This document shows, in pieces, positions 11,601-40,305 of a DNA stretch of 64,000 bases (the stretch's first letter is position 1; each line of letters begins with the position of its first letter). The position numbers and the translations under genes were made by a program. The DNA is taken from assembly GCF_000315625.1 (NCBI RefSeq), contig NW_005434565.1:112374-176373 (forward strand), read 5' to 3'. The DNA comes from Guillardia theta CCMP2712 (taxonomy: Eukaryota > Protista > Cryptophyta). Below the pieces are notes generated by a model. The model saw only the letters and a program-made list of their open reading frames with translations. It searched no databases and was not told where the DNA came from.

Positions 11601-14600
11601 CGCCTCGATGGTTTCCTGCACACGGTTCGAAGACGTCTGAGCTGAGAACTGAATGTTGAGGTCAGTCATGGACTCCGGGAGCTGCGCGAGGCACTGCTGG
11701 ATGATGGTTGTCTTGCCGCAGCCGACAGGGCCAGTGATGATGACGTCACGATGCTCGCGGATGAGAACGTCTAGTAGAGACGTGTTGCGGATGGAGTCGA
11801 TGGTCGGCACGATCAGCTTGAAGAAGGGAGTATCCGCAGTCGGTCTCCATTGCTTCGCCGTCACTTTCTCTTCCCAGGGGCTCCACTGCACCTTGTGAAC
11901 GTCAACGAAGTAGTCGTAGACTGTGTTCTTGCCCGGTAGCTGGGCATCGATCTCTCTGATACAAACGTCCAACTTCCTCCTTCCGTTCTCGTCTGCTCCA
12001 GCTCCCAGAGACCAGGCTAAGCAATATATGAACCACATCTCAGTCATCTTTGCAAGCGTGTCACTTCCTGGTACGATTCCGTTCGCCTTGGTGCTCAAGG
12101 CGTCGAAGAGCTTCGTCAAGCTGATCACAGTGTTGAGAGGAGAGAGCGGAATGAGCTCAGTGACGTTGTGCTTCTTGTTCTCGAGTATCTTGTCGATGTA
12201 CTTGTCGATCAGATTCGAGATCAGCGGTACCATCTCAGCATCCTCCTCCTTGCCCTTCTTGGACTCCAACCAGCTGTCAGTGTAAGAGCGCCATCCCAGC
12301 CCTGAGAGGTCGAAGTAGATCATCCCTGCTCGACTCACTGTGGCAGGTGAGGCCACAGCAAGGTCCTCGACTTCGAACAGACACTTGACCATGGGAGGCA
12401 ACGCGATTCTTTCGCCGTTGATCAGAGTCAACAGCTTATTGTCGTCCAGAACCGTGTTCATGCTCTCTATCCACAGGGTGTCGACGGGCCCGTCCAGAAG
12501 GATCCATTTGTTGTCGGGCTTCTCGTCGGAGCAGGCTTCACGCATGCAGCTACTGAGAGTTCCATCAGTCCATTCGCGCGTCATCAGGTTGTACTCGCCG
12601 AACAGCTCTCCCAGACTGAACGCCTTGGGATTGAGCACGAAAGTCACCACCCGCTCCCACCCGCTCTTATTCTGCTTCTTCAACGAGTTGTGAGCCTTCT
12701 GCAGGGTGGACCAGGCGGTGGTTTTTCCTGTCTTGGTTCGCCCTACCAGCATGTTGCCGTGCCGGCAGGCCTTGGCCTCGTAGATCTGGATGGTCTTGAG
12801 GATGATGTTTTGATTGTGCTGCAGCTTTGACTCGGTGAGGGACTCTTTAATGCCTTGCAGCAGATCTCCGTAGTCCACCACAGGCAGCTCAACCCCTGGG
12901 AAAAGATCCCCGCAAAGAGCGTTGAAGAGGTGGATGTCCGAGCCCACCAGCTTCGGGATGGACATGTCTCTCACTGCCCGCAGAAGGATCACTTCCTCCG
13001 ACATCTCCGGATCGACTCGCTTGACAGAACCTGCGACGACGAGGACGGCTTTGATAGCTCTCATCCCGTAGTCATAGTGATCCTGCTTGCTCATCTGCTG
13101 CTGCATCAGCTGGTAGAGCGTGATCAGCTTCTTTCCCAACACTTTTCCGTTCTGAAATCCCTCAGAGCTCAGCATGATTTCAGCTATCAAAGCAAGATCC
13201 GGCACCATCATCGCTATCGGCCTCAGAAGAGCTTTCAAATTGTCGGGAAGTTCAGAACGGCCGGCATATCCCGGGTTCATGGTGACGAAGATCCCGAGGG
13301 TCTTGATCAGCTTGATATGAATTCCTTCGAAGATGAGAGAGTTTTGCATCTCCTTGACAGCCGTGAGGATCTGAAGGATCTGCTGGGCTACAACTGAGAG
13401 GACCTCTATGTCAATCCTGTTGAACTCATCGAAGCATGACCACGCTCCCTGCTGGCAAAGACCTGAGAACATGCGCCCGAGAGACTTGTAGTCGAGGCCA
13501 TCCGAGCAGTTGAAGACTAGCACGTACATGGCGATCGCCTTGCCGAGGTCCTTCACCGTCTCTGTCTTGCCGGTGCCAGCTGGGCCCAGGGGATTTCCTC
13601 CTCTCTTGAGGTGCAGAGCTGTGGTGAGGGTCATGTAGCACCTGTCAGTGAGAGGGGTGATGACAAGCCTTCCGTTGTTCCCCTGGTATTCGTAGCCGTA
13701 GACGAACTTGCTCTGATTCTGCTTCGTCAGGCAATCGTCAATCTCTTTGTCCCAATAGAATCGAAGTTGTGACATCCACTCGAAGTCGTTGAGGTACGCC
13801 GTGCCGTTTTTGATCATCTTGTCGATTACATCTCGAGCATGGACTTCGATGGTGATGATTGCGACGACCTTGTTTCGGTTGAGCTTGTTCAACTGGCCTC
13901 TCACCATCTCCGCATACTTGTTGAGCAGCACCACCTGCTTCTTCTTGGCGGTGCGGACGCCGACCTTGTTGCCTTTCTCGCTATCAAGGAGACCCTTCTC
14001 ACACTCAGACGTCCACTGCATCTGACCGGCAGTGATCAGGAGCTGACCCGGAAAGTCGTTGACCCACTTCTCTCGCTTGGTTCCTTTCATGGAGCTAAGG
14101 GTTTGATTGAGAACCTTGCGGAGGGTCTGGCGCATGACATTCTCGATCTCCAACAACCAAACTTCGACAGGTCCATCTATCGTGATGTGACTCGTGAACA
14201 GCACGCTCTCTCCGTCCGGCGAGTTCATGGCGATCGCTTCGTAATTCCTCCGACCGTCTTTGCCGGGCGGCTCAAGTTTGAGGGACTTGATGGCTTCGAA
14301 GCACTTCTTCAAGTGAGGCTGGACAGCCAGGGGGTCTCTTGCCTGCCCTAAAATCTCCAGAAGGTCGTCGTTGGAGATGAAGTAGAATCGCGGGAACGCC
14401 TGCCGTTTGGTCTCCAGGTACTGGTCCAACGACTTTTGGATCTTCTCGAGGTTCGACTCCAAGTTGTTCAGCGTCTTCAGCATTCCGTCCAGTTTGCAGG
14501 CACTCACGACGTTGTTCTCCTGTTGCAGACGTTTCATGATCTGCTTCCATGTGGTGTTGATCTGATCGAAGAGCTTCGACTCGGTCGGCAGCTGCTTCCG

Positions 14601-17600
14601 AATGTCTTCTGAGCCCACGAAGATGTTCTCCAGGTACATCCAGTATCTCTGCACCGTGAGGATCGACTCGACGGTCTCTGAGACCAGTGACAGCGTTTTC
14701 TCCCACTTCTCAAGCTCGGGGAGAAACGACAAGGCATACTTGGATGACTTCATGGTTGAAAGTGAGACCACGTTGTCCTCCAAGGCTGCAAACACTTCCT
14801 CCGTAGATCTCAACATCAAGTAGTCTTCCTTGTACTTGTGAATATCTAGCTTCATGACGTTCCAAGTGCTTTCCATGTTGTTGACTGCTTTCTCAATCAT
14901 CAACTCCTTGCTGGCAGAGTTCGAGATTGTACCGATCACCTCTGCAAAACTGGGAAGCTGTAGTTCCATCACCTTGTTCAGGGTGAAATCGTCATCGGAA
15001 GGCTCGAAAGTCTTGCCAATATGCTCCATCAGTTGTATCCAGTGACGATCACGAAGGGCCTCGTTCCTGAGGTCTTGGATGAGAGGCAGCGCTCTCTTGA
15101 ACTGGTCCACTTTCTCTCTCGTCTTTTCCCAGATGTCCCAGTTCTTCACCTCCTTCCCAATCCTCTGCAACTTCTTGTTGAACTTTGCTGCTGCCTCCTC
15201 CATTTCCTCTGTGTGAAGGTCCGTGAACCTTCCGTTCTTCCACAACTCCCACATTTCATTCCACTCCTTCACCAAATTCCAACACTGCTCCAATAGCTCC
15301 AGGTCCTTCTCCACCAGAGATATGTCTTTGTACACCGGTCTATCCAGACCAAACAAGTCAACTCCGGCCTGCATTTTGCTCTCACCTTCTCGGTCTGCCG
15401 ATGTCATTTGCTTCCAGTGTTGGATCTGACTGAAGGCCTTCTGCAAGTCAGTGTTGGGATCGAAAGGTCCTTCCGACAGAAACTTCTTCCTCTTGTTGGC
15501 GACATCAATCTTGAATTGTTCCAGGCTCTGAATCAGGTTGCCTTTCATCTTCTCTTTGCTGCTGTGAAGCGACCGCTCTGAGTCTGTTAGCATCGCCTTG
15601 AACTTGACAAACTCATTGGGAAGAGACTCCACTTGCTCTTTTTCTTCTTCGGGAATGATGATGTCAAATTTCTCCAACAGCTTGTAGTGATCGTACAAAG
15701 GCTCAAACCTTGCGCTGATAGAATCTGTTTCCTCCTGCAGCTTCTTACATTGTGAAATCAGTTCGGCCAGCTCATCCAGATTGGAAGGATGTGTCTGAAA
15801 CTTCTGCGTGTTTGAAAAGAAGAGATCTCGCAAGGCATTTAATTCTGATGTTGCATTGCTGTGAAGCAAGGAAGTGAACTTGTTCTGCCAACCAATGCAG
15901 TGGCCAACAATTGCTTGCTTCAATGGCGAGCAATCGATACAGATGAAGTTCATGTTGACTATTGTATCTTCGGCAAGTATGTCATTCTGCAGCTCTCTGT
16001 ATCGTTGAATGTCCTGCTCGAAGGTTGCCAAGGTGCGGTTTGCTTTGGCATACCTCCGGATGTATGCATCTTTGTCATAGTCCCACGTGTGCTTGTACTT
16101 CTCCCAGAACGTCAGGTACTTTTGAAGTTTATCCAGGCTTGAGCTCATTCCTCCCATCACGCTCACCATAATCTTGAGGATATCTTCGTCATTCGAGATC
16201 CGCGAGTAAAATGTCTCCTTTGAGTCATGGAGGTCCTTCAACTTGGGGATGATTGTCACCACTGTGATGAGCTCCTTGGAGACATTGTTCACCATTTGCG
16301 TTAAGTTGTTCATCGTGGGTTTAAACTCCACTCTCTCCCTCTCTAACGTCATGTTCACCTTGAAGATAGGGTGCACCTCAGTCTTGGCATCGCCGTTGAT
16401 TGCCTTCGATATTTCTTGCAAAGATTTCTTCACGGTTGTACGCAGGGCATCTTCAACCATCCGATCGATCTTGGAAACATACCTGTGCCATTCTCTCTGT
16501 ATTTCTTCCATGTCGTTGCTGAACATCTCGTAACTCTTTGAAATCAGGTTCTTGATCTCTTCATGCGCATTCTTCAATTTGTTCTTGACGTCAGAACGGT
16601 GTTCGTCTTGCACTTGTTCAAAGCTTCCTTCTTCATATATACGCTTGTTCTCTATCTTCACCAACAAGGTATCTGCAATCATGTTCCCAAGTTTCATGAT
16701 TTGATCATGATTGGACTTGAAGGTCAGAACGAGTCTATAGACTTCTTCACAATGTGTACGGCATTGTCTGCAGTAGTAGTCGACTATACCGCGGGAGGAC
16801 CAATGCATCTTAGTTATACCAGGGTTGATGATCCGTTTCAGGTTGTTGAGTTTCTCCTGGAATAATTTACGTTCTCCCTTGTCTGTAATAGACAGAATCT
16901 TGTTGAAATCTCGCACAACAAGCAGCACGTTCTCTCGGATCACCCTGAACTTTTCACGCTGAGAAGCCATCTCCATAGCCGTGTAGGGGATAGGAAACAC
17001 CAACTTCTCCCAGTACCGGACTTCTTGGAACAATCGGATCAAGTCCTTGTCGAAGTTCATCTCCAGGAAGCCTCCGGCCACCTGGACGAGAAGGTTTCGC
17101 TCCAGCTTGCTCGCGTAGTTCTCGTCGATGTTAGACGCCCAGTCCTGATAGTTCTTCTTGATATATTCATCGATCGCGCCGCTGAGCGCGTAAAAGTTCG
17201 ACTGAGCCTCTTCATGCTCTCTGCAGCTTCTCAGGTAGTAGGTCGAGTTCAAGACTGTCATCTGATCCTGCAACCTTTTCTGCAAGGACTTGGCCCATAC
17301 GGCTGAACCGGAATACTTGGGAATTCCCTGACTGATAGGAGGGGAAGAACGATTCTGATTGAACTCACGTCCTACCTTTGTCAGCTCATTGAAAAACAGT
17401 GAGTAAACAAACGACGATTTGTTCTGCACCGTCCTCTTGATTGCTTCGCGCTTTGCCATATGGTGGAATGCCTCTAGCATCCTCAGCCCCTGCTCTACGG
17501 TGGAGACTGTCTCGAACGCACTTGTGATAACGTTTTGCATCATCATCTCCAAATCCTTGACTCCAGATTTGAATACGTTGTAATCATCATGCCATTTGGT

Positions 17601-19670
17601 CGCCTTCACATCCAAAATATTATACTTGAGGTTTGAAAAGTTAGTGATGAGCTTCTTGAAACTCTGCTGAATCTTTGTAAGGTTTTTCGAGATTTCGTCT
17701 CCTTGCACGCCACTGAAGACAGGTATTTCTGATTCCTCCGAGGGGCTGAATTGATTTTGACTCTCACATACCTCCAGCAAGTCACGGCATCTCTGCATGA
17801 AGGCATCTATTTGTGCGAAGATGCGACTCTCGTCATAGTTCCATGCTTTTTCGGGATCGATTATCTTCATCCTTTCTACCATCTTGCGGTAGATTTCTTT
17901 CCAGTCGTCTCCTGACTTTATGCTTTCCTGCAAAACTTGGGAGGGTTCTTCTATTTTACCGTCGAAGATGTCTTTCAAGTTGATGTTTTCACAACAACGT
18001 AGAATGATCTCGTTGCTGACTTTTCTCAGCAACCCCATGATTCGCTCAGGCGTATGGTAGTACTTAGACAGAGACCATATCACGCGGATCAGATTCAAAA
18101 TCTCCGGGAGATGTTGTGAAATGTCTTTCGGCTTCGCGCTTGCCAGTTTGGTACAGGGATCGAAGAGGATTTGGAGGAACTTGAGGTTATCGCGAGCTTC
18201 TTCACTGCCATCCATGATCTCTTGCGCTAGGTCGCTGAACGGTTTCAAGTATGACGACTTTGCTTTCTCAAGGACCGAGCAGATCCGCTTCACATCTGAT
18301 CGTTCGAGCTGTGAGCTGATTCCACTCAAATCGTCTGAGCGGCTTTTCCAATGCTGTATCTCCGCTAGAGGGCCTCTGTCCTCGTGTTGAGCATCGCTGT
18401 GAGAGGCATCGGACCCAGCAATCACCTCTTTGATCTGCCTCGTCCAGTGAATCAGGTTTGTCTCCAGGCGCTGGACTAGCTCCTTGTCTTTCACGCAGGC
18501 ATCCAAGTCAGTCAGATCGTCTCTCGGCACGTACAGCACGGTGTTGCCATGGATCTGATGCGAGCTTTCAGTCAAGATTGCCATAAACTTGTGTATCTGT
18601 CCGCTGAATTCCTTTCTAAAGCTGCACGCACTTGTCAGGGGTGACAAACAAACGCTCGACTACAGACCTATCTGGCCATGTGCTGTTGGACGAAACCGCC
18701 GGCACGTAGATTCTGCTCATCAACTTCAACAGGCTCGGTATACTTTCAGGACCAAGACCGTTCAGCTTCCCTGCAACAATCAGCCAACATGTCAGTGCAA
18801 CATCGTTTGCTATCCCTGCACTCACCATACTGCACCATCCTCCATATGTTTTCTCTCGTTACTGGAGACCCGCTGGACCTCATGAAGTACATGGCATTTT
18901 TAGCTCCGGGAGGCGGCAGATATTCTGAAAGGACAAGATCCCCTTTGAGTTTATACGCAAACAACCTCGCGCTTCTATCGCTTGTCAGGAATTTAACTGT
19001 TTCTTTGCGAACCTCATCTTCCTGCCACCAGACAAACATCAGGGATTGCATGAAGCACAAGCGTCGCACTCACAAAACTCTGATCTTCAGCGCACACGTG
19101 GGATTCAATCAACCTATCCCTGATCCACTCTACGCACTGAAGCAAACGCATGCCTTCCAAAGCTGAATCTGAGGGATCCTGCTCCGAGGGAAGGTCGGCC
19201 AGGATCTCTCTTGTAGTTGCAGACGTGTTCTTTTTCACGCTGATTTCTGCAGTTGCTTCAATCGGAGAGGCCTTGATCGATGAGACCGCGATGGAGCCAT
19301 TCACATTTTCGTTCTTAGGGGAGGTTTCAGAGGCGGTTGGATCTTGTACATCAGTTCCATTTGGTGATGCTTGCTCTTGCTCTCCTTGACTTCCGCTTGC
19401 CTCTTGACTTGTTTCATTCTCAGCAGGTCTCTCAGGGCTCTCGCCATTCTCATTACTCTCTTCGATCTTTTCATTGTCAATCAGTTTTTCTTTGCTTCCA
19501 ACCGGTGTATCCGTATCGTTGTTCTGCGGAGAGACGTTCTCGGGGCTTTTCTTGCCTGAATTTGGATCGTCATGCTTGTCGTCTTGACCAAGTCCTTCCG
19601 CTTGCTCCTCTCCTTCCATGACCGTCGCTTCTACCCCCTTCTCCTCCTGCTCCTCCGCCTCCGTCGCCAT
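5697..19670 (-). CDS. DNAH2: Axonemal inner-arm dynein heavy chain, I1/f-beta type (DNAH2/DHC10)
   Basis: 4316-aa ORF plus three upstream exons (introns 19022-19073, 18771-18825, 18622-18667). P-loops GPAGTGKT, GRTKTGKT, GPVGCGKT, GVGGSGRQ; CFDEFNR; stalk coiled coil; C-terminal DHWIKRGTAMLL and N-terminal WPDSFRKEFSGQIHKFMA resemble DNAH2. Confidence 0.93.
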
Positions 19671-28876: not shown

Positions 28877-30239
28877 ATGGTCGCATTTGGTGAATCGGGG
28901 AAGCTCTCGGAATTCAAGAACCTCACCCTCATCGGGAAAGGATCGTTTGGGAAAGTTTATCGAGCTGTTCGTCTGTCGGACAATATCGAGTGAGTCTATT
29001 CCTGAGCGTCTCTCGCGCCCAGTACTGACTCACTGCTGCAGGTATGCCCTCAAAGAGCTGGACATGCGCCCAATGCAACAGCGAGAGAGAGAAGATTGTG
29101 TTAACGAAGTTCGCATCCTTGCCTCCAGTACATGCAATCCTTACATTGTCCGTTATTTCGATGCCTTCATGGAAGGCGAAAGCCTCTGGATTGTCACTGA
29201 ATTGGCAAGAGGAGGCGACATGGACGCCAAAGTCAAGCGGCATCAAAAGCGTGGGGAGTACATGCCTGAAGATATGATCTGGAACTTCTTCATTCAGATT
29301 TGTCAGGGTTTGAAACATCTGCACTCAGCCAATATTTTGCACCGGGACATCAAAGCTCCCAACATCTTCATCACAGGTCCGCGATCGGTGAAAATTGGCG
29401 ACATGGGTGTGGCCAAGTGCACGAGGAGCGGCATGGCGCGGACGCAGATTGGAACGCCTTACTACATGTCCCCTGAGCTATGGAGAAACCTTCCATACGA
29501 TCAGAAGAGCGACATCTGGTCGCTGGGGGTGCTCATCTACGAGTTTGCTGCCCTCAAGCATCCGTTCCAAGCACAGAACGAGCGGCAGCTGTACGAGCGA
29601 GTGATGCGAGGTGCCTACCCTCCCATCCCTCGATGCTACAGCCCGGAACTAGCGAATGTGATCAGAATGATGCTGACTCAAGATGCTTCGAAGAGACCCA
29701 CCACGGATGAGCTCCTTGCCCTCCCAGCAGTCCAGAAGCACTTGGAAAGTGCTGAGACAGCTATGGAAGACATGATCTTCAACAAGGAGTGTCTTGTTGG
29801 CACAATTCAGGTTCCCAGGATCCTCACGCATCTACGAAACAGACTGCCAGGATCCAAGTATGAGCACGACAGCAGGGACATTGGGGAGAACGGCCCAGTG
29901 CCAACCTCACGGAGCTCGGAAGGTAGAACGAAGAGACGTAAGGACCGGGGCAGCGTGATCAAGAGCATGGATGAAGGATTAATCAGGAGGTCGAAATCAG
30001 AAGCTCTTGAAGCCCTTAACTCGGAGTTTTTCTCCAAGAAACATGATTCGCTGCTCCAGAGAAACAGATCGGAAGTGAGTGTCCTCCCAAAGATTCCCTA
30101 CAACATGGCGAAGAATGCAGAGATCGTGAGGATCAGGAGGGACGATGTGCTTGGACGATTACCTCCCATCCCTACGGCCGGCTCGAGATACAGCAGGCAG
30201 GAATTGAGAGCATTCCATGATAGACGACGACCGTGGTGA
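28877..30239 (+). CDS. NIMA-related (NEK) Ser/Thr kinase, CNK2-like
   Basis: ATG 28877 gives MVAFGESGKLSEFKNLTLIGKGSFGKVY; intron 28990-29041; then YALK, EVRIL, HRDIKAPNIF, KIGDMG, TQIGTPYYMSPE, PYDQKSDIWSLG, all typical of NEK kinases. Confidence 0.92.
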
Positions 30240-30388
30240 GATGAACTTGTAGAAAATTCAACCCTTTCCCATTGATGTAATTTAGTCTTAATGTGCGATT
30301 TCACTTGTTCGAGTACAGAGTAACTTCTTTTCAAGGATGTCAACTTACTAATAAAAAGAGAACAATCTACTCGTTGTCTATGTACATG

Positions 30389-32092
30389 TCAATCGCTCGC
30401 CCCATTCCCTTCAAGCGCCTTGCTGCTGCTGAGGCATCTCCAGAACCCTTCCTGGGCCCTCTTGGTGGAATCGATCGCGTCCTGGAACACTGGTTTTGGA
30501 GCAGGCACTTCATCTGTACCCTGGAAATCTTCCAGCAGATCTGTTTGAAGGAGGGCACAGGTGCACGCGGCAACCGACTGGCTCGTGGCTCTAAGACTGT
30601 AGCCCCCCTCCAGAACGAGCACGACTTTCCCTCCTGCCAGTTGCATGCAAGCTTGCGTCATCTTGTAGTAGCACGACGGTGTCACTTGGCACCCACCTAG
30701 TGGGTCACCTTGCGCGGCATCGAACCCAGCGCTGATGAGGACAAGGTCCGGGCGGAATTCTCTTCCTATCGGGAGGAGGAGCTGGTCGAGGACGGCGAGG
30801 TACTCGGCGTCTCCTGCTCCAGGCTTAGGCCAAGCCACGTTGACCGTGAAGCCTTGTCCCTCGCGAGTGCCGCAGGAGGACGAACTGCCGTCGGGGCCTC
30901 CCGGATAGAAAGAGCCTCTGTCATGACGATGGACGGAGAAGAAGAGGACGGACGAGTCCTCAAGAAACATCTTCTGTGTCCCGTTACCATGATGCACATC
31001 CCAGTCGAAGATCAAGATCCTCTTGGCCCACTGCCTCAGCTTCGCTTCCCGTGCCGCTACAGCAACGTTGCCGAAGATGCAGAAACCCATAGCACATGCG
31101 GGCAGCGCGTGATGTCCTGGCGGTCTGACAGCACAGAGCGCCCTTCCAAGTGCGTTGGAGGCGACCATCCTTGTGGCCTCGACCACGGACCCAGCAGCCA
31201 GCAGGGCACACTCCCGAGACTGCGGGCAGAGGTAGACAGAGTTCATCTTGGACGCGATGTCGTCGAGCTCCTTCTGCTCCTCCGGCAACGAGCAGATGGT
31301 GTGCACGTACCCAGCTGCGTGCACAGATGAGAGCTCCTCGGGCCTCGCGAGACGGGCTCGCACCAACTCCATCCTCTGCAGGAGCCCGTGCTGCGCGAGC
31401 TCGGCATAGATGTAGGAGAGGCGGAGCGGCTGCTCGGGGTGAAAGCCGTGGGGCGATTCATGCAGCTCCATCCGTCTGTCGTACACGAGTCCAACTCTGA
31501 ACCGTGGGAGGGTGTCGTGCACAGACTGGTGCGAGCCGACGAGGTCCTGAGGCTCCATACTCAACCACTTGTCGATCTTCTTACTGTCTCTCGTCGAAGG
31601 GCTGGTGCGCGTGCCAGCAGCCTGAGGCTTGACGGCTGGGCTTCCGTTTGGTGCGGAGGCGACGGAGACGTTGATGACTTCGAGCTTGTCGGGGCGAACG
31701 AGATGGCCGTGAAGGGGTTGGCAATCAAAGAGCCTCCTCCCCTTCACTGTCCCGTCATTCTTCCCCACGGCCTCTCGGTACCTCACGCCCACCCAGAAGC
31801 CTATCGGGAGATTCTCTACCTCGCCGATGAAAGCTACCTCACCCTCCTTGCCCTCCACGCGGCAAAGCTGCCCCACACGCAGCTTGGCCGCTGCACTTGC
31901 GAACTCAGCAAGAGCTTGGCTTGAAAGCTGCTTCTTAGCCATCATGTGCGCCCGCACTCGCTCCTCCTTCCATGCAGCGACAGACGCATGCGCGTTTGGC
32001 TTCAGACCATCATCATCGCCTCCTCTGATATTCTCGTTCACAACCGCAAGCTCCCTCATGGCGAGCTTGTCCTCGCCGTCGTTTCCTTGCAT
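30389..32092 (-). CDS. CAP-Gly domain + class IIb (HDAC6-like) deacetylase fusion, intronless, 567 aa
   Basis: CAP-Gly: FWVGVRYREAVGKNDGTVKGRRLFDC. HDAC: HPEQPLRL, NSVY, RPPGHHA, MGFC, DWDVHHGNGTQ, FYPG, SAGFDAAQGDPLGG, LEGGY. An in-frame stop lies upstream of the ATG. Confidence 0.92.
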   Translation of the reverse strand: MQGNDGEDKLAMRELAVVNENIRGGDDDGLKPNAHASVAAWKEERVRAHMMAKKQLSSQALAEFASAAAKLRVGQLCRVEGKEGEVAFIGEVENLPIGFWVGVRYREAVGKNDGTVKGRRLFDCQPLHGHLVRPDKLEVINVSVASAPNGSPAVKPQAAGTRTSPSTRDSKKIDKWLSMEPQDLVGSHQSVHDTLPRFRVGLVYDRRMELHESPHGFHPEQPLRLSYIYAELAQHGLLQRMELVRARLARPEELSSVHAAGYVHTICSLPEEQKELDDIASKMNSVYLCPQSRECALLAAGSVVEATRMVASNALGRALCAVRPPGHHALPACAMGFCIFGNVAVAAREAKLRQWAKRILIFDWDVHHGNGTQKMFLEDSSVLFFSVHRHDRGSFYPGGPDGSSSSCGTREGQGFTVNVAWPKPGAGDAEYLAVLDQLLLPIGREFRPDLVLISAGFDAAQGDPLGGCQVTPSCYYKMTQACMQLAGGKVVLVLEGGYSLRATSQSVAACTCALLQTDLLEDFQGTDEVPAPKPVFQDAIDSTKRAQEGFWRCLSSSKALEGNGASD

Positions 32093-32283
32093 GACTCTCT
32101 CGCCCGCTGGCTCAGCTCATCTGCAAGAGAGGAAATCAGCGCTGCCTTTACTCATTCAACTTGTCGAGCGAATGAAAGCTGGTGATCACCCTCCTCCTTC
32201 CTCAACCTTCTCCAGCAGCACCTCGAAACACTATCTCTCCTTCCTTTCCTTCCTCCCCTCCCTCTCCTTCCTCTCCCTGCCGG

Positions 32284-32364
32284 ATGTACCTGCTGTACCT
32301 GCTGTACCTGCTCATGACTGCTGTACCTGCTGTACCTGCTCATGACTGCTGTACCTGCTGTACC
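32284..32364. repeat. Short tandem repeat (CTGTACCTG units with CTCATGACTG variants)
   Basis: Read directly from the sequence, in the spacer between divergent genes. Confidence 0.8.
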
Positions 32365-32727
32365 CGCTCTTCTTGCATCTCTTCTCCTCCCCCCTCCCTG
32401 CATCCCGCGCACTCTCCTCGCATCCCGCCTTCCCCACCTCGCCCGCTCCCTTCAGTCCCGGCCTGCCTCAGACCCACCTAGACAAACTCGGATGCGACTG
32501 CATGGTTTTTCGGGGAGAGCAAGCAAGGGGTGAAGAGGAGGAGGGGGTCGAGGGAGAGGAGGAGGAGGAGGAGTAGTAGTAGTAGTAGTAGTGAAGAGGA
32601 GGAGGAGGAGGAGGAGCCAAGGAGGAGGAGGAGTGAAGAGGAGGAAGGGGTCGAGGGAGAGGAGGAGGAGGAGGAGGAGGAGATGGAAAGGAGGAAGAGA
32701 GACTAGTTGAAACCGATAGGCACGATA

Positions 32728-35700
32728 ATGTCGCCTGCCCGATGCCTCCTGGTCCTCGCGATGTTGAGCACCGCGAGCAGTCTTGACCCGTTGAGTCCGC
32801 ACGCGTGCAATTGCGGGATGTGCGGTAAAGACGCCATGGTGGAGGAGCTTCTCCTTCAGCGGCAGAGGAAGATGATGAAGCTAGAGACTCTCGTGCTGGG
32901 ATCTTCTCAGGTCCTCGCTGAACGTGACACGGTGGCACTGAGGACTCGATGGGTTGACCTGAACGAGGAGCAGGAAGCAGCCGCTCAGTCTCTTGCTGCC
33001 AGCATGCGCGCTGAGTTTCCTGGCTGCCATGACGAGCTCGAGATGCGGCAGGGAGAATGGATCTCCTTCACATGCAGGCTGAGTGACTGCAAAGTGCTAA
33101 AAAGCCTGTCAGGCTGCATGTCTGTGGGAGAGAAGTCGAAGTTCAGAGTGCCGAACTCGATAGTGCCGGCGCTCTGCCGGGAGATGTTCGTTCATGGGAT
33201 GAGTCTGATCAGCTTTCAGAGCGACGGGACTGATTTTCTCCCTTGCTCCACAGACCTCAACCGATTGCTGTCTATGAATAATCAGCCACCAGCCTCTCTG
33301 GTACAGCAGGGAGCCGCGTGTCTAGAGGTGTTTGTGATCTGCAGAGACATGAGTCCTGTGAGGCATCTCTGTGATGTCTACTGGAAGAGCTTGTCGGTTG
33401 TAAGAAACAACTCAGCGAACAGCACCGAGGACAAGGGAAAAGTGGCCAAGATCAGGTGATAAGGCTCTAGTAAGAGGTAGTTGCGAGACTGACCGGAAGG
33501 AAGCCCGAGGCCTGGGGATGAGGTGGAGATCGCCTGGCAAGCCTTCGAAGAGCGCACAGGAAAGCAGCAGGAGACAACTTCTGGCTTCATCTCCCTCAGG
33601 GTCCCAGGCAAGTCCTCCTCCTCCAACCTCCTCCTCCTCCAACCTCCTCCAACCTCCTCCAACCTCCTCCAACCTCCTCCTCCTCCTCCTCCTCCTCCTC
33701 CTCCTCCTCCTCCCACTCCTCCTCCTCTTCGCCAGATCCTGACGGGGCAGCAGGGACTCAGAACCCCCTGCTCTCAAACGAGGACAACATCAAACTAGCA
33801 ATGCGGAAGAGAAGAGGAGATGAGCAGCAGATGAAGCTCCCAATGGGTGTCTGGGTGGCTGTTGTGTCCCTCATGGGGGAGGGAACTTCGGTCAGCATCT
33901 TCGCCCTGCCCTCCTGTTACTTACCTCCATGAAAGATCGAATGCCTTTGCCCGACCGACACCCAGCAAGGAACTTTCAAGACGTCTTCCTCCTCCAGTCT
34001 TCCTCACAGTGTTCCACAGCGTAAGAACTAATTTTGCGCTATAGCAGCAAGTTGACGTTTCCGCGCAGCAGAGAACTTCACGAGATACCGCGTGCGGCTC
34101 CTTTCATGGAGTGAAGTGTCGGTCATGAGACTCGAGGAACGGACGTTCAACCATGCAAGGAGGAGGAGGAGGAGGTTAGCGATCGTAAAACGCGTGACCC
34201 ATCAGGCAATGGACTTTAAGACAACGTTCAATGACGATGGAACTTGGTCCTCTTACATCAATCCCCATCCTCCCCCTGCTGATTTATCGCCCCCACCGCT
34301 CTCCATTCCCTCCTCCCACTTCTTCCTCTACTTTCCTCCCCCTCATTATCACCCTGTTGGATGTCTCATACAGATGCAGGATACGTGCACAGATTGAAAG
34401 TCGGATAGGATTCCAGCCAGCAAATCAAGATCCCCGAAGGTGAATCTGTTTGCTTCTTTCACGTTGCTAAGTCGAAACAAGTATCCTTCAGGGCCCCGAC
34501 CCCCTCGCCACCTCCACGGTGCCTCTTCCGAGCGCTCTGCGTTCGTTCTTTGACCTTGGAGACCAGGTGATCAGTGCGTGGAAGGAGAAGACTTTCTTTG
34601 TTGGAGACGGAAGTTTGCCGTACGAGGTTGAGAGGGATATCCAATCCCATGACTCTCCTCTGATTTCTCCGGCAGTTGTGCGAATGTCTACAAGAAATGA
34701 TGATCGGAGACGTTTACGTCGTAGCCATTCCCTCTCGCGCTCTCGACGACAGTGATCATTTCTCTCCTCCTCCTCGTCCCTTGACCGTTCTGCAGAATTT
34801 CTCTCTTGGAGCACGAGCATCAAGGATTACAGAATCTTAAAAGCTTGCTTGCTTGACGACAAGAACCTGGGTGCGAATGTACATAGCGAACCGAGCAGTG
34901 GCAACGACGAAGTGGATCAGGATGAGGAGGAAGAGGAGAGGGAAGAGCCAGAAGAGGAGCTCGAGCATTTTCTTCTCTACAAAGTGAAAATCCTCGAAGC
35001 CATTCCTTCGTTCCAGCTCCCACCTCAAGGTCCTCACCCTCCCCAGCAATGGTCCATCTGACAAGGGGTCTGCAGAGCTTCTGCTTCAAGCCAAGAATCG
35101 AATCGCAAGGTCTCGTGGCGGTGTCGGGAGTTTGTGCCTGACTGGCCAAGCAGGGGGGTGCAAGCACGCAGCCTCCAGCATCTGGAAGGTGATCCGAGGA
35201 AGGAGGGAGGGGGGAAGAGAAAGAAGAGAGGAGAGAAATAGAGGAGGGAAAGATGGGGGGAAAGAGGAAGGAGAGAGGAAGGAGAGAGGAAGGAGAGAGG
35301 ATGGAGAGAGGATGGAAACAGAGGAAGGGGGGGGGGGGGGAGAGAAGAGAGTGACATTGTTTGAAGCTGCGGTCGACTTCTTCCTAAAGTCTCACAAGCT
35401 TCTGTCCTCAGCAGCGGTGACATGGGTATACGAGTTGCTGTGCTTGCTGACCGCTGGTGACTTCATGCGCAGTCGTCAGTGGATGGGGAAGAGCTCAGGT
35501 GCAGGGAGAGGAGAGGAGGGGGGTCCGGCAAGTGACTCGTCAGCAGCACCACCCGATTCTCGCTCATGGCCGAAACTTGCCTCGGAGTTTCCAGCTGCCT
35601 GCTCAAGCTCGGAAGGCAGCTGGGCAGGAACTTTATCCCTCTGGTCCGCGACTACTGCAAGCAAGGGCTCGCGTCTCTAGAGACGACCCTCGACGATAGC

Positions 35701-35754: not shown

Positions 35755-38700
35755 CTGCACCCTGTGCCGGGCTGCTGATGGAGGGGAACACAACCTTCCT
35801 CCGAGGGTCGTAGCGGTATGGAGAGTCGGGACGACACTTTCTCGCACCTGTAGCAGCTGCTGGAGCTGCTGCTGGAACAGGGGGTGGGTCGGGGCTGATG
35901 GCAGGAAGAGGCTGCTCTGCCCCCTTGCTCGTGCGGTTTTTCAGCTGAACTGTGCCGTCAGAGGTGAAGACTTGCTCTGCCGTGTTGTGCTGGCACTCAA
36001 ACTCCTCCAGCAGCGCCGTTGCCTCCTCCATCACCACCAGCCCCCTGCCGTTGGCTCGAGAGGCCCCGAAGGAAAGTTGAGCTCGAGCTTGTTGGGACAA
36101 CAGGATCCCTGACCCTCCGTTGCCCTCGAACGAGCAGAAGCGAGCTTGCATGCTTGCTCCCTCAGTCACGGCGAGCCCGCTGCTCTCGTTGTCATGTACT
36201 CTCATGTCTGAACATGTCACAACTGTTCCGCTCCCTTTCACCGTCAACCCGTTCCTGCCATTGCGCCGCACGTAGCTCTTCCTGCCTCCCTCCGCCCCCC
36301 ACAGGGTCACTGCTGCCCCGTCCTCCACGCTCACTCCGTCCTCCCCGTTAGCATGGATCACCTGCAGGCTGGTGAGAGCAGCAGGAGTCACCCCATCCTC
36401 ACCGTCTCCGACGCTCGCAGCGTCGTTCCGCTCCCCCTCGCCCGAACTCCAGCAGCACGGTTGAGGAGCACATCGCAGCTGTCCAGCTGCACTCCAGCTC
36501 CATCACAGACGAGGACGCCGTCGGTCGCGTTCTCCCGGATGATGGAGGACCGGAGAGACATCCGGCTCCGCTTCTCCTCACACACCACCCCCTCCTGCAC
36601 CTCACGATCTTGCAGCCCGTCAGCACTGCCGACCCCCGCGCTCCCACCGTCAGCCCGTCCTCCATGCACTCGCAGATGATGCTCCCCACCGCCTCCATGG
36701 TCCCCCCCACCAGCACGAGCCCGCAGCTACGACTCTGCTCCGAATCAGCTGGGGAGAGAAGGTGAAGAGGATATCCCACCTTGCTGACAGAGCTGTCCTT
36801 CAGTCTGAGGTCTCCAAAGCTCTTCAAGCAGCTCGACTTCAGCTCGGAGTTGACAAGCTGCGGCAGCACGTCACTTGAAGCGGACAAGTGCAGGAGGGAC
36901 CTCAAGAGAAGCGCCGGCGAGGACGCAGAGAGTGAGGTCTTGCGAGGAGAGGATGCAAGAGGTCAGCTGGAGCTGCTGCTGGGCCTCGCAGATGTTCACT
37001 TGTTGCAGTCACAAAGGTCAGTGGGAGCAGGCGACTTCGTTCAGCTACCTTGTGCCCCGTGCGCCTCTCCCCCTTGAACGTCGACAGTGACACCCACGAG
37101 CGATAAGTTGAGACTCTTGCCGTCAGGTCGTCAGCAGAGCATGTCAGCATCTGCTCGCTCACCAGGTCTCGGCACGAGAGCACGCAATCAAGGGAAGTAC
37201 ATCCGTAGGCTGATACTATGGAGATGTGTTTCATCTCCTTCAGCGGGGTTCCTGATGTGTGATGGAGGTGAGAACGGCAGAGAAGCTGAGTGTTTTCAAC
37301 CTGTCAGCTCGTATCGACCTCGGCCAATGATAACAGCGTCGTGGTCTTGTGCTTGCTCCAGCAAGGAGTTGATGACAAACACGTCTTCATCGACTTCGAA
37401 CATGGTGTAGTGGAAGGTCTGAAGGAGGTCGATGAAAGCCTGAGAATCCTTGACTTGACCGTCTAGTTCAGCTTGTTTCACTTCTCTCGCTCTGTCTCTT
37501 CCATCTCTCACGATGATGGCTCTTCCTGTCAATCTGTTCTCAACCATCTGCTCTATGCTGAAGTCTCCGGGAATGCTGACGTCATCAGCTGCTAGCGATG
37601 TGCCTGGCTGATCTTGTTGGGGTTTGGTGTAGGCGATCATACCCTTCTCCCTCATGATCTTCTTCCTCTGCATCGACCCTCTTCGCTTCAGCAGCGACGA
37701 GTAGCAGAAGTGAGAAAACTCCTCCATGCTCAGAACTCCATCTTCGTCAACGTCGTTCTGTCGGATCATGGCATACACCTCCCCCTCCATCTTCTTCATC
37801 CCCAGCACCTCCATGGCCTCGCTCAGCTCCGCAACCCCAACACGCCCTGACCCGTCAACGTCCATCTTCTCGAAGATCTCCTGGATTGCTCGGACGAGCT
37901 CGTCTCCTGTCAACCCGTCGATCTTCTGCGTGAATAGCACAGACGCCTTGGAGATGCCGGCCCAGGAGCGGAAGGTCAACCCCAGCTGAAACTTTGGGGA
38001 GAAGAACGAGCTGGCGATCTTCATGTTCGGCTGGCTGTGCTGAGCGATGTCTTCGTTGACGCTCCCAAAGATAGCGCAGTTGACAACCTTTATCACTGCG
38101 GCGTCTTGCGACCACACCCCGTAGCCGTTGCCCTTGACTGTAGAGTGACTGACGTGAACGGAGGTCTCGCGCTCCTTCAAGTCCTTGTCTTGGATCCCGA
38201 TGGCTAAGATCCCGATGCTCTCGTTGTCCAGTACCGCACACTTGCGGAGCTCGACGCTGCTGCCGTTGAGGATCCAGAGCCCGTTCTTCTTGCTCTGCGT
38301 CACTTTGGTCTGCAGCATCGACAAGCTTGTCTGGTAGTCGTTCACACTCACTCCGCTCCATCTCGATCGCGATATCATGCTGCCTTCCACCTTCACCTGC
38401 GCTCCCTTGCCGACTACAAGTCCTCTCTGACCGCTCTCGGTGACTTCGAGGGCGATCCCGAGGAAAGAGACGCCTCCTCCCTTCACGTCTACTCCATCCT
38501 TGGCACACTCACACACCTTCACCTCAGCAAGTTCTACTCTCCCCTGCTCCATCACAAGGACCCCGTTTCCTCCGCATCCTCTTACTTGACTTGCCTTCAT
38601 CATCAGCGCTGCCCCTTCCCCCTCGCCCTTCACCACAACTCCGTTGCCTGCCTCCGTCGTGACATCTACATGCACCAGCTCCATCCTACCGCCCTCGACC

Positions 38701-40305
38701 TTAGCGCACTGGGGAGGCCATTGGAACGAGTCGTTGCGTCCCAGCAGCTCTAGTATGATGCTCTCGACCCGGCTGGACCCCCGCAGGCAGCAGAACACAG
38801 AGTCTATCATGCTCCCTCGCACTTGAGCCTGTTCGGGGTATGCGACGCCCATTCCTCCTCCTCCGAACCCTCCGCTCGCCCGGGGGAGCTCAGCAGGCAG
38901 TCTGCTCCCCTTCATGCTCTCGAGGGTCTGCTTGATCCCGCTGCCTCCTCCTGGCAGAGACCCCGAGAGCTTCTCCAAGCAGAACTTGAACAGCTTCTCC
39001 TCCGAGGGCCTCGATGCCGCCGCTGCGTTGAAGTAGCACGAGCTCACTGGTCTCGAGCTCCCCGACGCTCCGTCTCTCCCTCCCACTCCTGCATTCTCAC
39101 CCAGCCCGCTGCTGCCATGCTCCTCTAAGCTTGCGTCCCTCCCATCACTTCCTGGCGTTGTTATCGAGTCTGTTGCTCCTCCACCTCCCCCAGCCGCCAC
39201 CAACACCGCTCCGCTCGAGAGCTCCTTCTTGAACACGAAAGTCCCTCCTGCTCCGCCCGAGCAGCTCCCCATGCTGTCAGACAAGGTAGAAGAAGTGCCT
39301 CCTACCAGCAGGAGCACCCTCTCCCCCTCCTCCAGGTGGAACTGCGCCTCTATCACCGCCCCTGTCCCTCCCTTGCGATCTCCGGCCCCTGCTGCTCCTG
39401 CCCCTGCAACTCGCAAAGCATACGTGCTCTTGATTGGAACCGTCCACAGCTCGACCCTGCCGCTGTACTTGAAGAGCCACTCGTCCTCCAAGATAACGTC
39501 CAAGATCCTCACAAACCCATTCCCTTCGTTTCCCCGCAGCTCTACCCTCCCCTTCACAGTCTGATACCCAACGTACTTCGACACGCTCTTTGCTAGATTG
39601 CTTACAAAGCTTCCTCCTCCGCCGCCTCCTCCTCCTCCACGACCTCCATACCCACCACCTCCTCCCCCCGACCATCCTCCCCCACCTCCTGCAGCGTAGT
39701 TGATCTCGGGGCGAAACACCAGATCCTTCTGCAGGAGCGTGTGAGCAGGGGATGGAACGAGATCACAAAAGCTCTGCTACCTCCGTCACAAACGGCTCGC
39801 TGATCTCTTGGATCCCTCGCTTCACTATGATCACGTCCCCGTCATGCAGCTGCTGGGGTCCTCCTGGACTCCCTCGCAACGACGAGGGGGCTGAGAATCC
39901 GAGGCTACTGAGAGCGATGCCGTACTTGTGGCTCAACACGTGCGGCTGTTTGAAGAAGAGCACAAAGGGACAGGCTTTCAGTCTTGCCTTCTCGAGCGAC
40001 CTTGTGTTGATGGCATTGCCAAGCTCTCTCGAGTATTCTTCTACAGTGGAGGAAATCTTCTGCAGCTCTACTCTCTCCCTCTCCAACATCCCGTTGAGCT
40101 CCTTCCATGACGTGGCTGAGAACTTTTTCATCACCTGATCATGAAATCCTTGCCGCTGACTGCAGATTGCTGCTCGGAAGAACCCATGTCTCACAGGAGG
40201 CTGCTGAGCGTTGGGAACATACCTGACTCCCTCCTTCTGCTCTTCCTTCTCCTCCTCCTCCTTCCCCTGATCATTCTCCTTTCTTCTTGGATCATGTCGC
40301 TTCAT
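35729..40305 (-). CDS. Large protein with right-handed beta-helix repeats, ALK/LTK-type Gly-rich domain and an EF-hand pair; 5' end uncertain
   Basis: Repeated 'G.GV.V......L..C.V..N' units in ORFs 37296-39719, 36399-36905 and 35729-36391. Gly-rich motif WTVPIKSTYALRVAGAG...LVAAGGGGG. EF-hand loops DVDGSGRVGVAE and DVDEDGVLSMEE. Confidence 0.75.

Follow-up and report, generated by a model that had tools for sequence, protein, structure and literature searches.

Does the reading frame at positions 30389-32092 of the minus strand encode a single protein in which a CAP-Gly domain is joined to a class II lysine deacetylase, and what would such a protein do in the cell? The frame lies in a 64,000-nucleotide stretch of the Guillardia theta CCMP2712 genome (the window). 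It starts with ATG, although M12 is a possible alternative start, and runs uninterrupted for 567 aa; the first ATG and the frame are the same in a relative (L035). The initial annotation had described it as one intronless ORF joining a CAP-Gly domain of the tubulin cofactor B (TBCB) type to an intact deacetylase resembling the second catalytic domain (CD2) of HDAC6, and had pointed to transcripts across the domain junction and to the rarity of the architecture as checks. Pfam recognizes one CAP_GLY and one Hist_deacetyl domain in the protein, each over the full profile length, and the same search returned no UBL, no zf-UBP and no second HDAC domain. The following features were assigned to the locus:

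32093..32244, minus strand: 5' untranslated region (cDNA contigs, no joints)
30389..32092, minus strand: whole CAP-Gly/HDAC ORF, 567 aa, with the stop codon at 30389-30391
31886..31984, minus strand: S(V/L)A(A/E)WK motif and long helix (alignment A1; AF2 model)
31682..31876, minus strand: CAP-Gly domain, TBCB-type, residues 73-137 (Pfam PF01302; PDB matches; AF2)
31751..31765, minus strand: GKNDG motif of the tail-binding groove, residues 110-114 (motif search)
31604..31660, minus strand: flexible Ser/Pro/Ala-rich linker, residues about 145-163 (AF2 pLDDT <50)
31442..31594, minus strand: conserved pre-domain segment, residues 167-217 (alignment A1; AF2)
30554..31441, minus strand: class II (IIb-like) Zn-dependent lysine deacetylase domain, residues 218-513 (Pfam PF00850)
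31106..31123, minus strand: PPGHHA, residues 324-329, with the tandem catalytic H327/H328 (motif search; invariant in A1)
30980..31006, minus strand: DWDVHHGNG, residues 363-371, with the Zn ligands Asp365 and His367 (HDAC6 CD2 alignment)
30692..30727, minus strand: GFDAAQGDPLGG, residues 456-467, with the third Zn ligand D458 and the gatekeeper L465 (HDAC6 CD2 alignment)
30596..30613, minus strand: LEGGYS, residues 494-499, with the catalytic tyrosine Y498 (HDAC6 CD2 alignment)

The fusion is invisible in databases because the public annotation cuts the gene into two fragment models, and for the same reason the exact ORF sequences of the window are missing from the protein collection. One model (P0404, 83 aa) covers the CAP-Gly domain, starts at an internal Met and stops mid-domain; the other (P0289, 301 aa) covers the HDAC domain and has no start codon; neither terminates at a stop codon. 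Two separate partial models would be expected if the ORF were a false merger of two adjacent genes or a product of misassembly. However, both models are mid-ORF fragments, and the junction at 31500-31700 is spanned without a splice joint by cDNA-derived contigs from three studies (X1, 29042-31837; X2, 31147-32122; X4, 30405-32122). Upstream of the ATG, the contigs extend to 32244 (X1 record 2) and to 32122 (X2 record 5 and X4 record 11). The GT..AG introns of the neighboring genes (52-nt and 48-nt) are missing from the X1, X2 and X4 runs, and the depth of these runs in the intergenic region 32274-32607 is zero, which identifies the contigs as RNA-derived. Expression of the ORF is low, with contig depths of 5-40 versus thousands for the neighboring kinase (X4). 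A 6% sample of the single raw RNA run X17 contained zero reads on the ORF; its reads cluster where the transcript of the neighboring kinase is polyadenylated.

An environmental ortholog (P0405, from L035) is 97% identical and keeps the whole frame. The dN/dS ratio against this ortholog is 0.19 overall, 0.24 in the CAP-Gly domain, 0.23 in the linker and 0.12 in the HDAC domain, which is the most constrained part of the protein. With the frame unbroken, the cDNA contigs crossing the junction, the identical fusion in independent metagenome assemblies and purifying selection on the linker itself, the two-gene or misassembly artefact was rejected, and we give it almost no credence. The CAP-Gly/HDAC fusion is a real, single, intronless and transcribed gene that evolves under purifying selection.

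The same architecture was identified in P0001/P0125 (a 44-member cluster from Tara marine metagenomes), P0135, P0136, P0137 and P0176/P0406. The fusion is conserved in at least five lineages, four of them marine environmental. It is nevertheless rare among the best-ranked relatives of each domain, in agreement with the initial annotation: a CAP-Gly domain was found only in P0001 among the best 240 HDAC relatives listed, and an HDAC domain only in P0176 among the best 150 of 3501 CAP-Gly matches (1.84 billion representatives). The closest relative, P0096, has no recognizable CAP-Gly domain, and a tblastn search of L039 for an upstream CAP-Gly exon found none. A literature search found no paper describing a CAP-Gly + HDAC fusion, and the combination of CAP-Gly with an HDAC6-like deacetylase is apparently both rare and undescribed. 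The locus also illustrates how a real multi-domain architecture can escape database surveys when a reference genome carries only partial models of its single domains. The contig of the marine ortholog (L001) is gene-dense, with a GC content of 0.58-0.60.

The CAP-Gly domain matches PF01302 over profile positions 1-65 of 65 (E 3e-18, 65.9 bits, cut-off 26.5) and is modeled with pLDDT >90. Its GKNDG motif is intact, as had been proposed; the groove residues W100, K111 and F122 are present in columns that are invariant across 40 CAP-Gly domains, and N112/D113 are nearly invariant in the same set. The top four PDB matches are all TBCB (4b6m, 1whg, 1tov, 1lpl), by a modest margin of 72-59 bits for TBCB (T. 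brucei, mouse and C. elegans) versus 55-52 bits for dynactin p150Glued and CLIP-170, the two standing at 55 and 53. The TBCB exon of G. theta itself shows 75% identity to the domain over 20 aa. Together with the lack of a PF14560 match in the protein, these matches support the earlier assignment of a TBCB-type CAP-Gly domain without UBL. The likeness to TBCB claimed for the preceding segment is retained in part: a helix (residues 38-69, pLDDT about 80-97) leads into the CAP-Gly domain and is included in the alignment with mouse TBCB (1whg), which spans residues 46-138, but SVAAWK itself (residues 37-42) falls outside it. Within the family this motif takes the form S(V/L)A(A/E)WK, with W41 invariant in alignment A1. 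A predicted complex of the CAP-Gly region (residues 30-145) with the last 40 residues of the G. theta alpha-tubulin gave a score of 0.19 and a mark of 0.34 in a run made without controls, and speaks neither for nor against binding.

The domains are separated by a linker (residues 138-196) rich in Ser, Pro, Val and Ala, whose length and sequence vary among orthologs, as seen from the gappy columns in A1. It is followed, with pLDDT of about 90 from residue 171 or so, by a segment that packs on the HDAC domain and carries the motifs (I/Y)(D/E)KW ... PR.R.GLVYD; its invariant positions in A1 are K175, P181, G186, P196, R197, R199 and G201-D205.

The deacetylase domain matches PF00850 over profile positions 1-297 of 298 (E 8e-90, 301.6 bits, cut-off 27.9). 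The catalytic and Zn-binding motifs GHH, DVH, GFD and GGY, previously called intact, were all located, and D365, H367, D458, H327/H328 and Y498 align with their HDAC6 CD2 counterparts. The alignment-based AF2 model of the full protein has pLDDT 88.6, with the HDAC domain >90; it replaced a single-sequence model with pLDDT 33.6. By sequence, the best PDB match is HDAC6 CD2 (313 bits, versus 273 for CD1; identity about 45-50%), and by structure, Foldseek places the HDAC part at TM 0.96 and rmsd 1.4-1.9 to zebrafish HDAC6 CD2, with CD1 at TM 0.95-0.96. A protein-atlas search with the 567-aa protein returned generic HDAC clusters only (0.87). At the gatekeeper position the protein has Leu versus Lys in HDAC6 CD1, for which PDB titles name a 'K330L' mutant. 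In HDAC10 this position is occupied by Glu. A role as an HDAC10-like polyamine deacetylase was rejected, the gatekeeper being Leu and not Glu.

How specific this likeness to CD2 is can be judged from the motifs and the phylogeny. Of the marks cited in the initial annotation, GDPKG in HDAC6 CD1 was confirmed by PDB alignment, but the Ser of the 'SIY' motif and GDPLG do not hold as marks of CD2. The protein has NSVY at residues 284-287, but aligned PDB sequences show that CD1 shares the Ser of 'S(I/V)Y' with CD2, so this residue does not single out CD2. GDPLG (residues 462-466) also occurs in the second class II HDAC paralog of the genome, which has no CAP-Gly domain, and is the consensus among single-domain class II enzymes of plants and protists, which makes it the usual form and not a CD2 signature. 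In a maximum-likelihood tree built without HDAC10, yeast Hda1 and class IIa references, the domain falls in a clade of protist single-domain enzymes (support 100/96, then 99/92), outside metazoan CD1 and CD2, with weakly supported deep nodes. The CD2-like claim is thus supported as a best sequence match and, in this tree with its weak deep nodes, not supported as orthology: 'HDAC6-CD2-like' denotes similarity.

Also in the wider clade of the tree are HDA5-like enzymes of plants and Hda1-like enzymes with Arb2, of which some act on histones. The protein might be a chromatin or general deacetylase of the Hda1/HDA5 type, in which the CAP-Gly domain recruits some partner other than tubulin, either one with an acidic-aromatic C-terminus or a ligand of the zinc-knuckle type. 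Its position in this group and the generic GDPLG loop would agree with such a role, and no sequence feature proves tubulin specificity; however, the CAP-Gly domain is specifically closest to an alpha-tubulin chaperone, the CAP-Gly-less paralog could cover a generic role, and the acidic N-terminus has no nuclear localization signal obvious by eye. We regard this explanation as unlikely. Much less probable still is a TBCB-like role in tubulin biogenesis or recycling, with the deacetylase domain regulatory or inactive. The CAP-Gly domain and the preceding helix are of the TBCB type, but the catalytic residues are all conserved in the most constrained part of the protein, the protein lacks the UBL domain required by TBCB, and a canonical TBCB is already encoded at C24:528528-529326. 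The only PF14560 matches of the genome lie there, at C24:529018-529326, adjoining a separate CAP-Gly exon.

The gene content of G. theta fits a tubulin acetylation and tyrosination system. The genome encodes a homolog of aTAT1/MEC-17, an alpha-tubulin that has K40 and terminates in GEEY, a vasohibin homolog and many TTL-family genes. A search for MATCAP gave no match, nor did its control. A canonical, tandem-domain and zf-UBP-bearing HDAC6 was sought in the genome and not found; the three zf-UBP (PF02148) matches are all on contigs without an HDAC match.

On balance, we lean towards the protein being a cytosolic deacetylase docked on tubulin tails. In the proposed mechanism, a TBCB-type CAP-Gly domain, placed behind a long helix, would be tethered by a flexible linker of ~20 residues to a complete class II deacetylase domain with an active-site entrance of the HDAC6-CD2 type. 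The GKNDG groove would grip the acidic-aromatic C-terminal tail of alpha-tubulin (GEEY here), and possibly the EB1 tail as well. Docking would concentrate the enzyme locally on tyrosinated tubulin, whether in soluble dimers or in dynamic microtubules, where it would strip acetyl groups, most likely from K40 of alpha-tubulin, and so counter the aTAT1 of the genome. The protein may fill the role of animal HDAC6 where the tandem-domain HDAC6 was not detected. We infer tail binding, the substrate and the selectivity for tyrosinated tubulin, as well as the cytosolic location, which is read only from an acidic N-terminus without a hydrophobic signal-like stretch. The coupling of tyrosination state to deacetylation and the part in flagellar control suggested by the initial annotation are likewise conjectural.

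The geometry of the microtubule bears on the choice of substrate. K40 faces the microtubule lumen, whereas the alpha-tubulin tail lies on the exterior; a protein docked on the polymer would not have its active site at K40, which makes soluble dimers, or substrates other than K40, more likely. Dimers are the preferred form of tubulin for HDAC6 and the only one used by TTL (PMC10136095).

Tubulin is also not necessarily the ligand, since CAP-Gly domains bind EB1 and other EEY/F tails. The protein might instead be a plus-end-tracking deacetylase, with the CAP-Gly domain on the EEY/F tail of EB1 and with +TIPs, MAPs or EB1 as substrates in place of lumenal K40. Such a role would remove the geometry problem, the CAP-Gly domains of p150Glued and CLIP-170 score near those of TBCB, and EB1 homologs are present in the genome. 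In animal cells, HDAC6 associates with end-binding proteins and with CLIP-170 (PMC3967059). However, the EEY/F end of the intron-containing G. theta EB1 genes is putative, and the protein has a single CAP-Gly domain and no coiled-coil dimerization region of the kind found in most +TIPs. We consider plus-end tracking improbable, somewhat more so than the Hda1/HDA5-type role.

Docking on tubulin tails, if correct, would allow a more specific proposal. Detyrosination and acetylation have long been known to co-occur on stable microtubules. The protein might act as a reader-eraser, in which the CAP-Gly domain reads the terminal Tyr of alpha-tubulin and confines K40 deacetylation to tyrosinated tubulin, that is, to freshly recycled dimers and dynamic microtubules, so that detyrosinated axonemes and rootlets stay acetylated. 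This proposal is tentative, and we would not expect it to hold, although we rate it slightly above the Hda1/HDA5-type role. If true, it would supply a direct molecular cause for the co-occurrence of the two marks in a single polypeptide that could be reconstituted.

The architecture can be compared with several known systems. Like HDAC6 CD2, the protein has all catalytic and Zn-binding residues, the Leu gatekeeper and its best sequence and structure match there, and HDAC6 also has a microtubule connection. Unlike HDAC6, it has one catalytic domain, with no CD1 and no zf-UBP, and carries an N-terminal CAP-Gly domain instead. Single-domain class II deacetylases (plant HDA5-like, yeast Hda1/Clr3-like and the protist P0110, P0116 and P0117) share its single catalytic domain, the GDPLG loop and the protist clade (99/92), whereas they have no CAP-Gly domain and the Hda1 type has Arb2 instead. 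TBCB shares the CAP-Gly domain and the preceding helix but carries a UBL, and its CAP-Gly domain is C-terminal rather than N-terminal. CLIP-170 and p150Glued have GKNDG CAP-Gly domains that read EEY/F tails, yet are non-enzymatic dimeric linkers. CYLD (three CAP-Gly domains and a USP deubiquitinase) sets a precedent for joining CAP-Gly domains to an eraser of a lysine modification; it differs in its catalytic domain and chemistry, in its several CAP-Gly domains and in its occurrence in animals. It is a tubulin- and microtubule-binding protein that also modulates HDAC6 and the acetylation of tubulin.

Animal HDAC6 relies on a disordered N-terminus, two catalytic domains and partner proteins. 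In the present protein, a putative tubulin-tail reader is welded to a single HDAC6-like domain within about 60 kDa, and docking and catalysis should be separable experimentally. The protein bears on how a tubulin deacetylase finds its substrate and on why two marks, acetylation and detyrosination, go together on stable microtubules. The gene may also serve as a 'Rosetta stone' fusion, in support of CAP-Gly proteins being functionally tied to tubulin deacetylation. HDAC6 physically interacts with CLIP-170 in cells; on CLIP-170 the contact maps to the coiled coil and the zinc finger and not to the CAP-Gly domain (PMC3967059). The fusion resembles this known partnership made covalent. An axonemal dynein gene was also identified within the same 64-kb window.

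The ORF at 30389-32092 (-) is unbroken, starts with ATG and encodes a protein of 567 aa. The fusion of a CAP-Gly domain to a deacetylase, proposed in the initial annotation, is confirmed by this ORF, by two Pfam domains matched over their full profiles, by the presence of all the motifs named there, and by a confident AlphaFold2 model (input alignment of 83 sequences; mean pLDDT 88.6, pTM 0.72). In the Pfam search UBL, zf-UBP and a second deacetylase domain were all absent from the protein, which is organized as follows.

Residues 37-42, SVAAWK
Residues 38-69, long helix (AlphaFold2 model)
Residues 73-137, CAP_GLY domain (Pfam, E 3e-18, full profile)
Residues 73-139, beta-rich CAP-Gly (AlphaFold2 model)
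Residues 110-114, GKNDG
Residues 145-163, disordered stretch of only ~20 residues (AlphaFold2 model)
Residues 167-560, compact deacetylase body including the conserved pre-domain segment (AlphaFold2 model)
Residues 218-513, Hist_deacetyl domain (Pfam, E 8e-90, full profile)
Residues 284-287, NSVY
Residues 324-329, PPGHHA
Residues 363-371, DWDVHHGNG
Residues 456-467, GFDAAQGDPLGG
Residues 494-499, LEGGYS

The N-terminus is acidic and without a hydrophobic stretch, from which we infer a cytosolic rather than a plastid-targeted protein.

RNA evidence over the domain junction at 31500-31700 was available as Logan contigs from three sequencing runs of three studies (X1, X2 and X4), all of which span the junction unspliced, with zero joints on the ORF.

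30405-32122, X4 record 11, crosses the junction
29042-31837, X1 record 1, crosses the junction
31147-32122, X2 record 5, crosses the junction

The three runs are cDNA-derived, since introns of the neighbouring genes are spliced out in the same contigs (a 52-nt intron at 28989/29042 and a 48-nt one at 33453/33502, each GT..AG) and the depth is zero in the intergenic region 32274-32607. The CAP-Gly-HDAC ORF is a single gene with a single transcript. It seems weakly expressed, with contig depths of 5-40; in X4 the depth is 31 vs ~6,000-14,000 for the adjacent kinase gene. In a 6% subsample of raw RNA run X17, zero reads fell on the ORF; this run looks like a 3'-end library, because its reads accumulate where the kinase transcript is polyadenylated. 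The full-length protein is absent from the public annotation of the genome, where the gene is split into two partial models on one 228,520-bp contig, P0404 (83 aa, CAP-Gly core) and P0289 (301 aa, HDAC core), so that the fusion is invisible to architecture searches; split gene models thus mask a real fusion architecture. That the fusion is an artefact, as two separate models might imply, is barely credible beside the contigs crossing the junction.

The architecture is real, expressed, conserved and rare. Over its full length the protein P0405 on the metagenome contig L035 shows 97% identity, and its gene shares the first ATG and the convergent kinase neighbour; dN/dS between the two genes, which rests on small counts (33 synonymous and 21 non-synonymous changes), is 0.19 overall, 0.24 for the CAP-Gly, 0.23 for the linker and 0.12 for the HDAC domain. 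A second, marine group with the same architecture includes P0001/P0125 (44 clustered members from marine metagenomes, Tara Oceans among them, and one contig of 41 kb), P0135/P0137, P0136 and P0176/P0406; its members share 70-77% identity with each other and 51-56% with the G. theta protein. In the family alignment W41 of S(V/L)A(A/E)WK and the CAP-Gly core including GKNDG are invariant, the Ser/Pro/Arg-rich spacer is variable, and the (I/Y)(D/E)KW ... PR.R.GLVYD segment leading into the catalytic domain is conserved. In all four partial marine orthologs (P0135, P0136, P0137 and P0176/P0406; L031 and L032) homology ends right after CAMGFCLFG, which suggests a shared intron position, absent from the G. 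theta gene and P0001/P0125.

Of the 240 top-ranking HDAC relatives for which precomputed Pfam domains were listed, a CAP-Gly was found only in P0001. A region-restricted search added three further CAP-Gly-HDAC proteins, and an exhaustive phmmer search with the CAP-Gly region over 1.84 billion representatives found an HDAC domain in 1 of the 150 best of 3501 matches (P0176); these figures rest on the top matches inspected. No named NCBI or UniRef record underlies any of the CAP-Gly-HDAC proteins. The architecture appears undescribed in the literature searched: a non-exhaustive full-text search found no published description.

The assignment of the CAP-Gly to the tubulin cofactor B (TBCB) type, without UBL, was borne out. 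The four best solved structures for this region are all TBCB (T. brucei 4b6m, mouse 1whg, C. elegans 1tov and 1lpl; 72-59 bits), followed by dynactin at 55 and CLIP-170 at 53 bits, and the mouse TBCB alignment reaches into the helix preceding the CAP-Gly. Several of the best single-domain database matches are UBL + CAP-Gly proteins, and the CAP-Gly exon of the genome's own TBCB shows 75% identity over 20 aa; the three remaining CAP-Gly genes show 34-47%. The protein thus shares with TBCB the CAP-Gly type and the preceding helix but lacks its UBL. Since canonical TBCB (UBL + CAP-Gly) is intact at C24:528528-529326, the fusion represents an additional TBCB-type module and not TBCB itself. A TBCB-like, non-catalytic role would suit the CAP-Gly type, but is very unlikely for a protein with the full set of deacetylase motifs.

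The HDAC domain scores best against HDAC6 CD2 (313 bits), followed by yeast Hda1 (280), CD1 (273), HDAC7 (268), HDAC4 (258) and HDAC10 (246), while the structural fit is about equal for CD2 (TM 0.96) and CD1 (TM 0.95-0.96). In a maximum-likelihood tree of 67 HDAC domains the CAP-Gly proteins group together (100/98), then with P0100 (100/96) and with eight CAP-Gly-less protist or environmental single-domain enzymes (99/92); this clade is separate from the metazoan groups of CD1 and CD2, and the deep nodes are poorly supported. The initial label "HDAC6-CD2-like" holds for the active site and the top sequence score, but probably not for ancestry. Its two proposed CD2 diagnostics fail: the serine of the NSVY-type motif is common to CD1 and CD2, and GDPLG is found also in a CAP-Gly-less paralog of the genome and in the consensus of plant/protist enzymes. 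This paralog (C43:376798-377676; ORF 1000-2658 of L003) is a second intronless class II deacetylase of 552 aa, with neither a CAP-Gly nor any other Pfam domain; the enzyme at C43:188319-189206 belongs to class I (Rpd3-like). Because the sister proteins P0110, P0116 and P0117 contain no CAP-Gly, the origin of the fusion is placed, by sequence comparison, at the base of the small CAP-Gly-HDAC clade. P0096 (JGI metagenome contig L039), the closest relative of the marine group, keeps the linker motif and the HDAC domain; a recognisable CAP-Gly is absent, the aligned N-terminal stretch, without GKNDG or the Trp, is remnant-like and decayed in look, and no CAP-Gly exon lies within 2.5 kb upstream. 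Its CAP-Gly may have been secondarily lost.

In the assembly (87,145,349 bp, 669 contigs) no contig contains both an HDAC locus and a zf-UBP match, which argues that canonical HDAC6 is missing. The fusion protein is a variant of the class II/HDAC6-like deacetylases and neither HDAC6 proper nor TBCB. The genome encodes a vasohibin homolog (E 6e-32), an aTAT1/MEC-17 acetyltransferase (E 1e-36) and an alpha-tubulin that has K40 and ends in GEEY, and it has TTL-family matches at 48 places. We slightly favour a tubulin- or microtubule-directed deacetylase, with K40 specifically as a more tentative substrate. The closest precedent for joining a CAP-Gly to an enzyme is CYLD. The CAP-Gly groove would grip the EEY end of alpha-tubulin (or EB1), the short flexible linker would tether the catalytic domain to the bound tail, and the deacetylase would strip acetyl groups, most likely at K40, acting against aTAT1. 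K40 faces the lumen, and the C-terminal tail lies outside. HDAC6 prefers tubulin dimers, and TTL works on dimers only (PMC10136095). On these grounds soluble tyrosinated dimers or dynamic ends would be the favoured target, recycled tubulin being reset while detyrosinated stable arrays escape deacetylation. HDAC6 binds CLIP-170, not via the CAP-Gly of CLIP-170 (PMC3967059), and the fusion can be likened to a covalent form of this known partnership. A deacetylase of chromatin or of proteins in general, its CAP-Gly serving to bind a partner, would be in keeping with the CAP-Gly-less relatives and is unlikely. EB1 homologs are present in the genome and could dock a plus-end deacetylase acting on MAPs, which we regard as distinctly improbable. 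The fusion protein offers a compact, testable system for how tubulin-tail state connects to acetylation.

Other features of the window were as follows.

28887-30239 (+), NEK-like protein kinase, intron 28990-29041, poly(A) site 30369, convergent with the deacetylase gene
32707-33459 (+), transcribed 250-aa ORF, intron 33454-33501, divergent from the deacetylase gene, without Pfam match
32150-32800 and 33380-33800, microsatellite-like low-complexity DNA, which on both strands yields long pseudo-ORFs of poly-Pro, poly-Leu, poly-Gly and poly-Arg
37296-39719 (-), 807-aa ORF with a right-handed beta-helix region and an EF-hand pair
5697-18647 (-), intronless dynein heavy chain of 4316 aa with an axonemal DYH2/5/8 coiled-coil domain

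The kinase poly(A) site and the deacetylase stop codon are only 20 nt apart, and an overlap of the two genes' 3' ends is therefore probable. The kinase neighbour is retained on L035 and does not adjoin the marine ortholog on L001. Run X2 has a one-base deletion at 32707, in the divergent 250-aa ORF. The axonemal-type dynein heavy chain indicates a flagellate organism, and its intronless ORF is unusual, as the genome's other genes are split by many ~50-nt introns.
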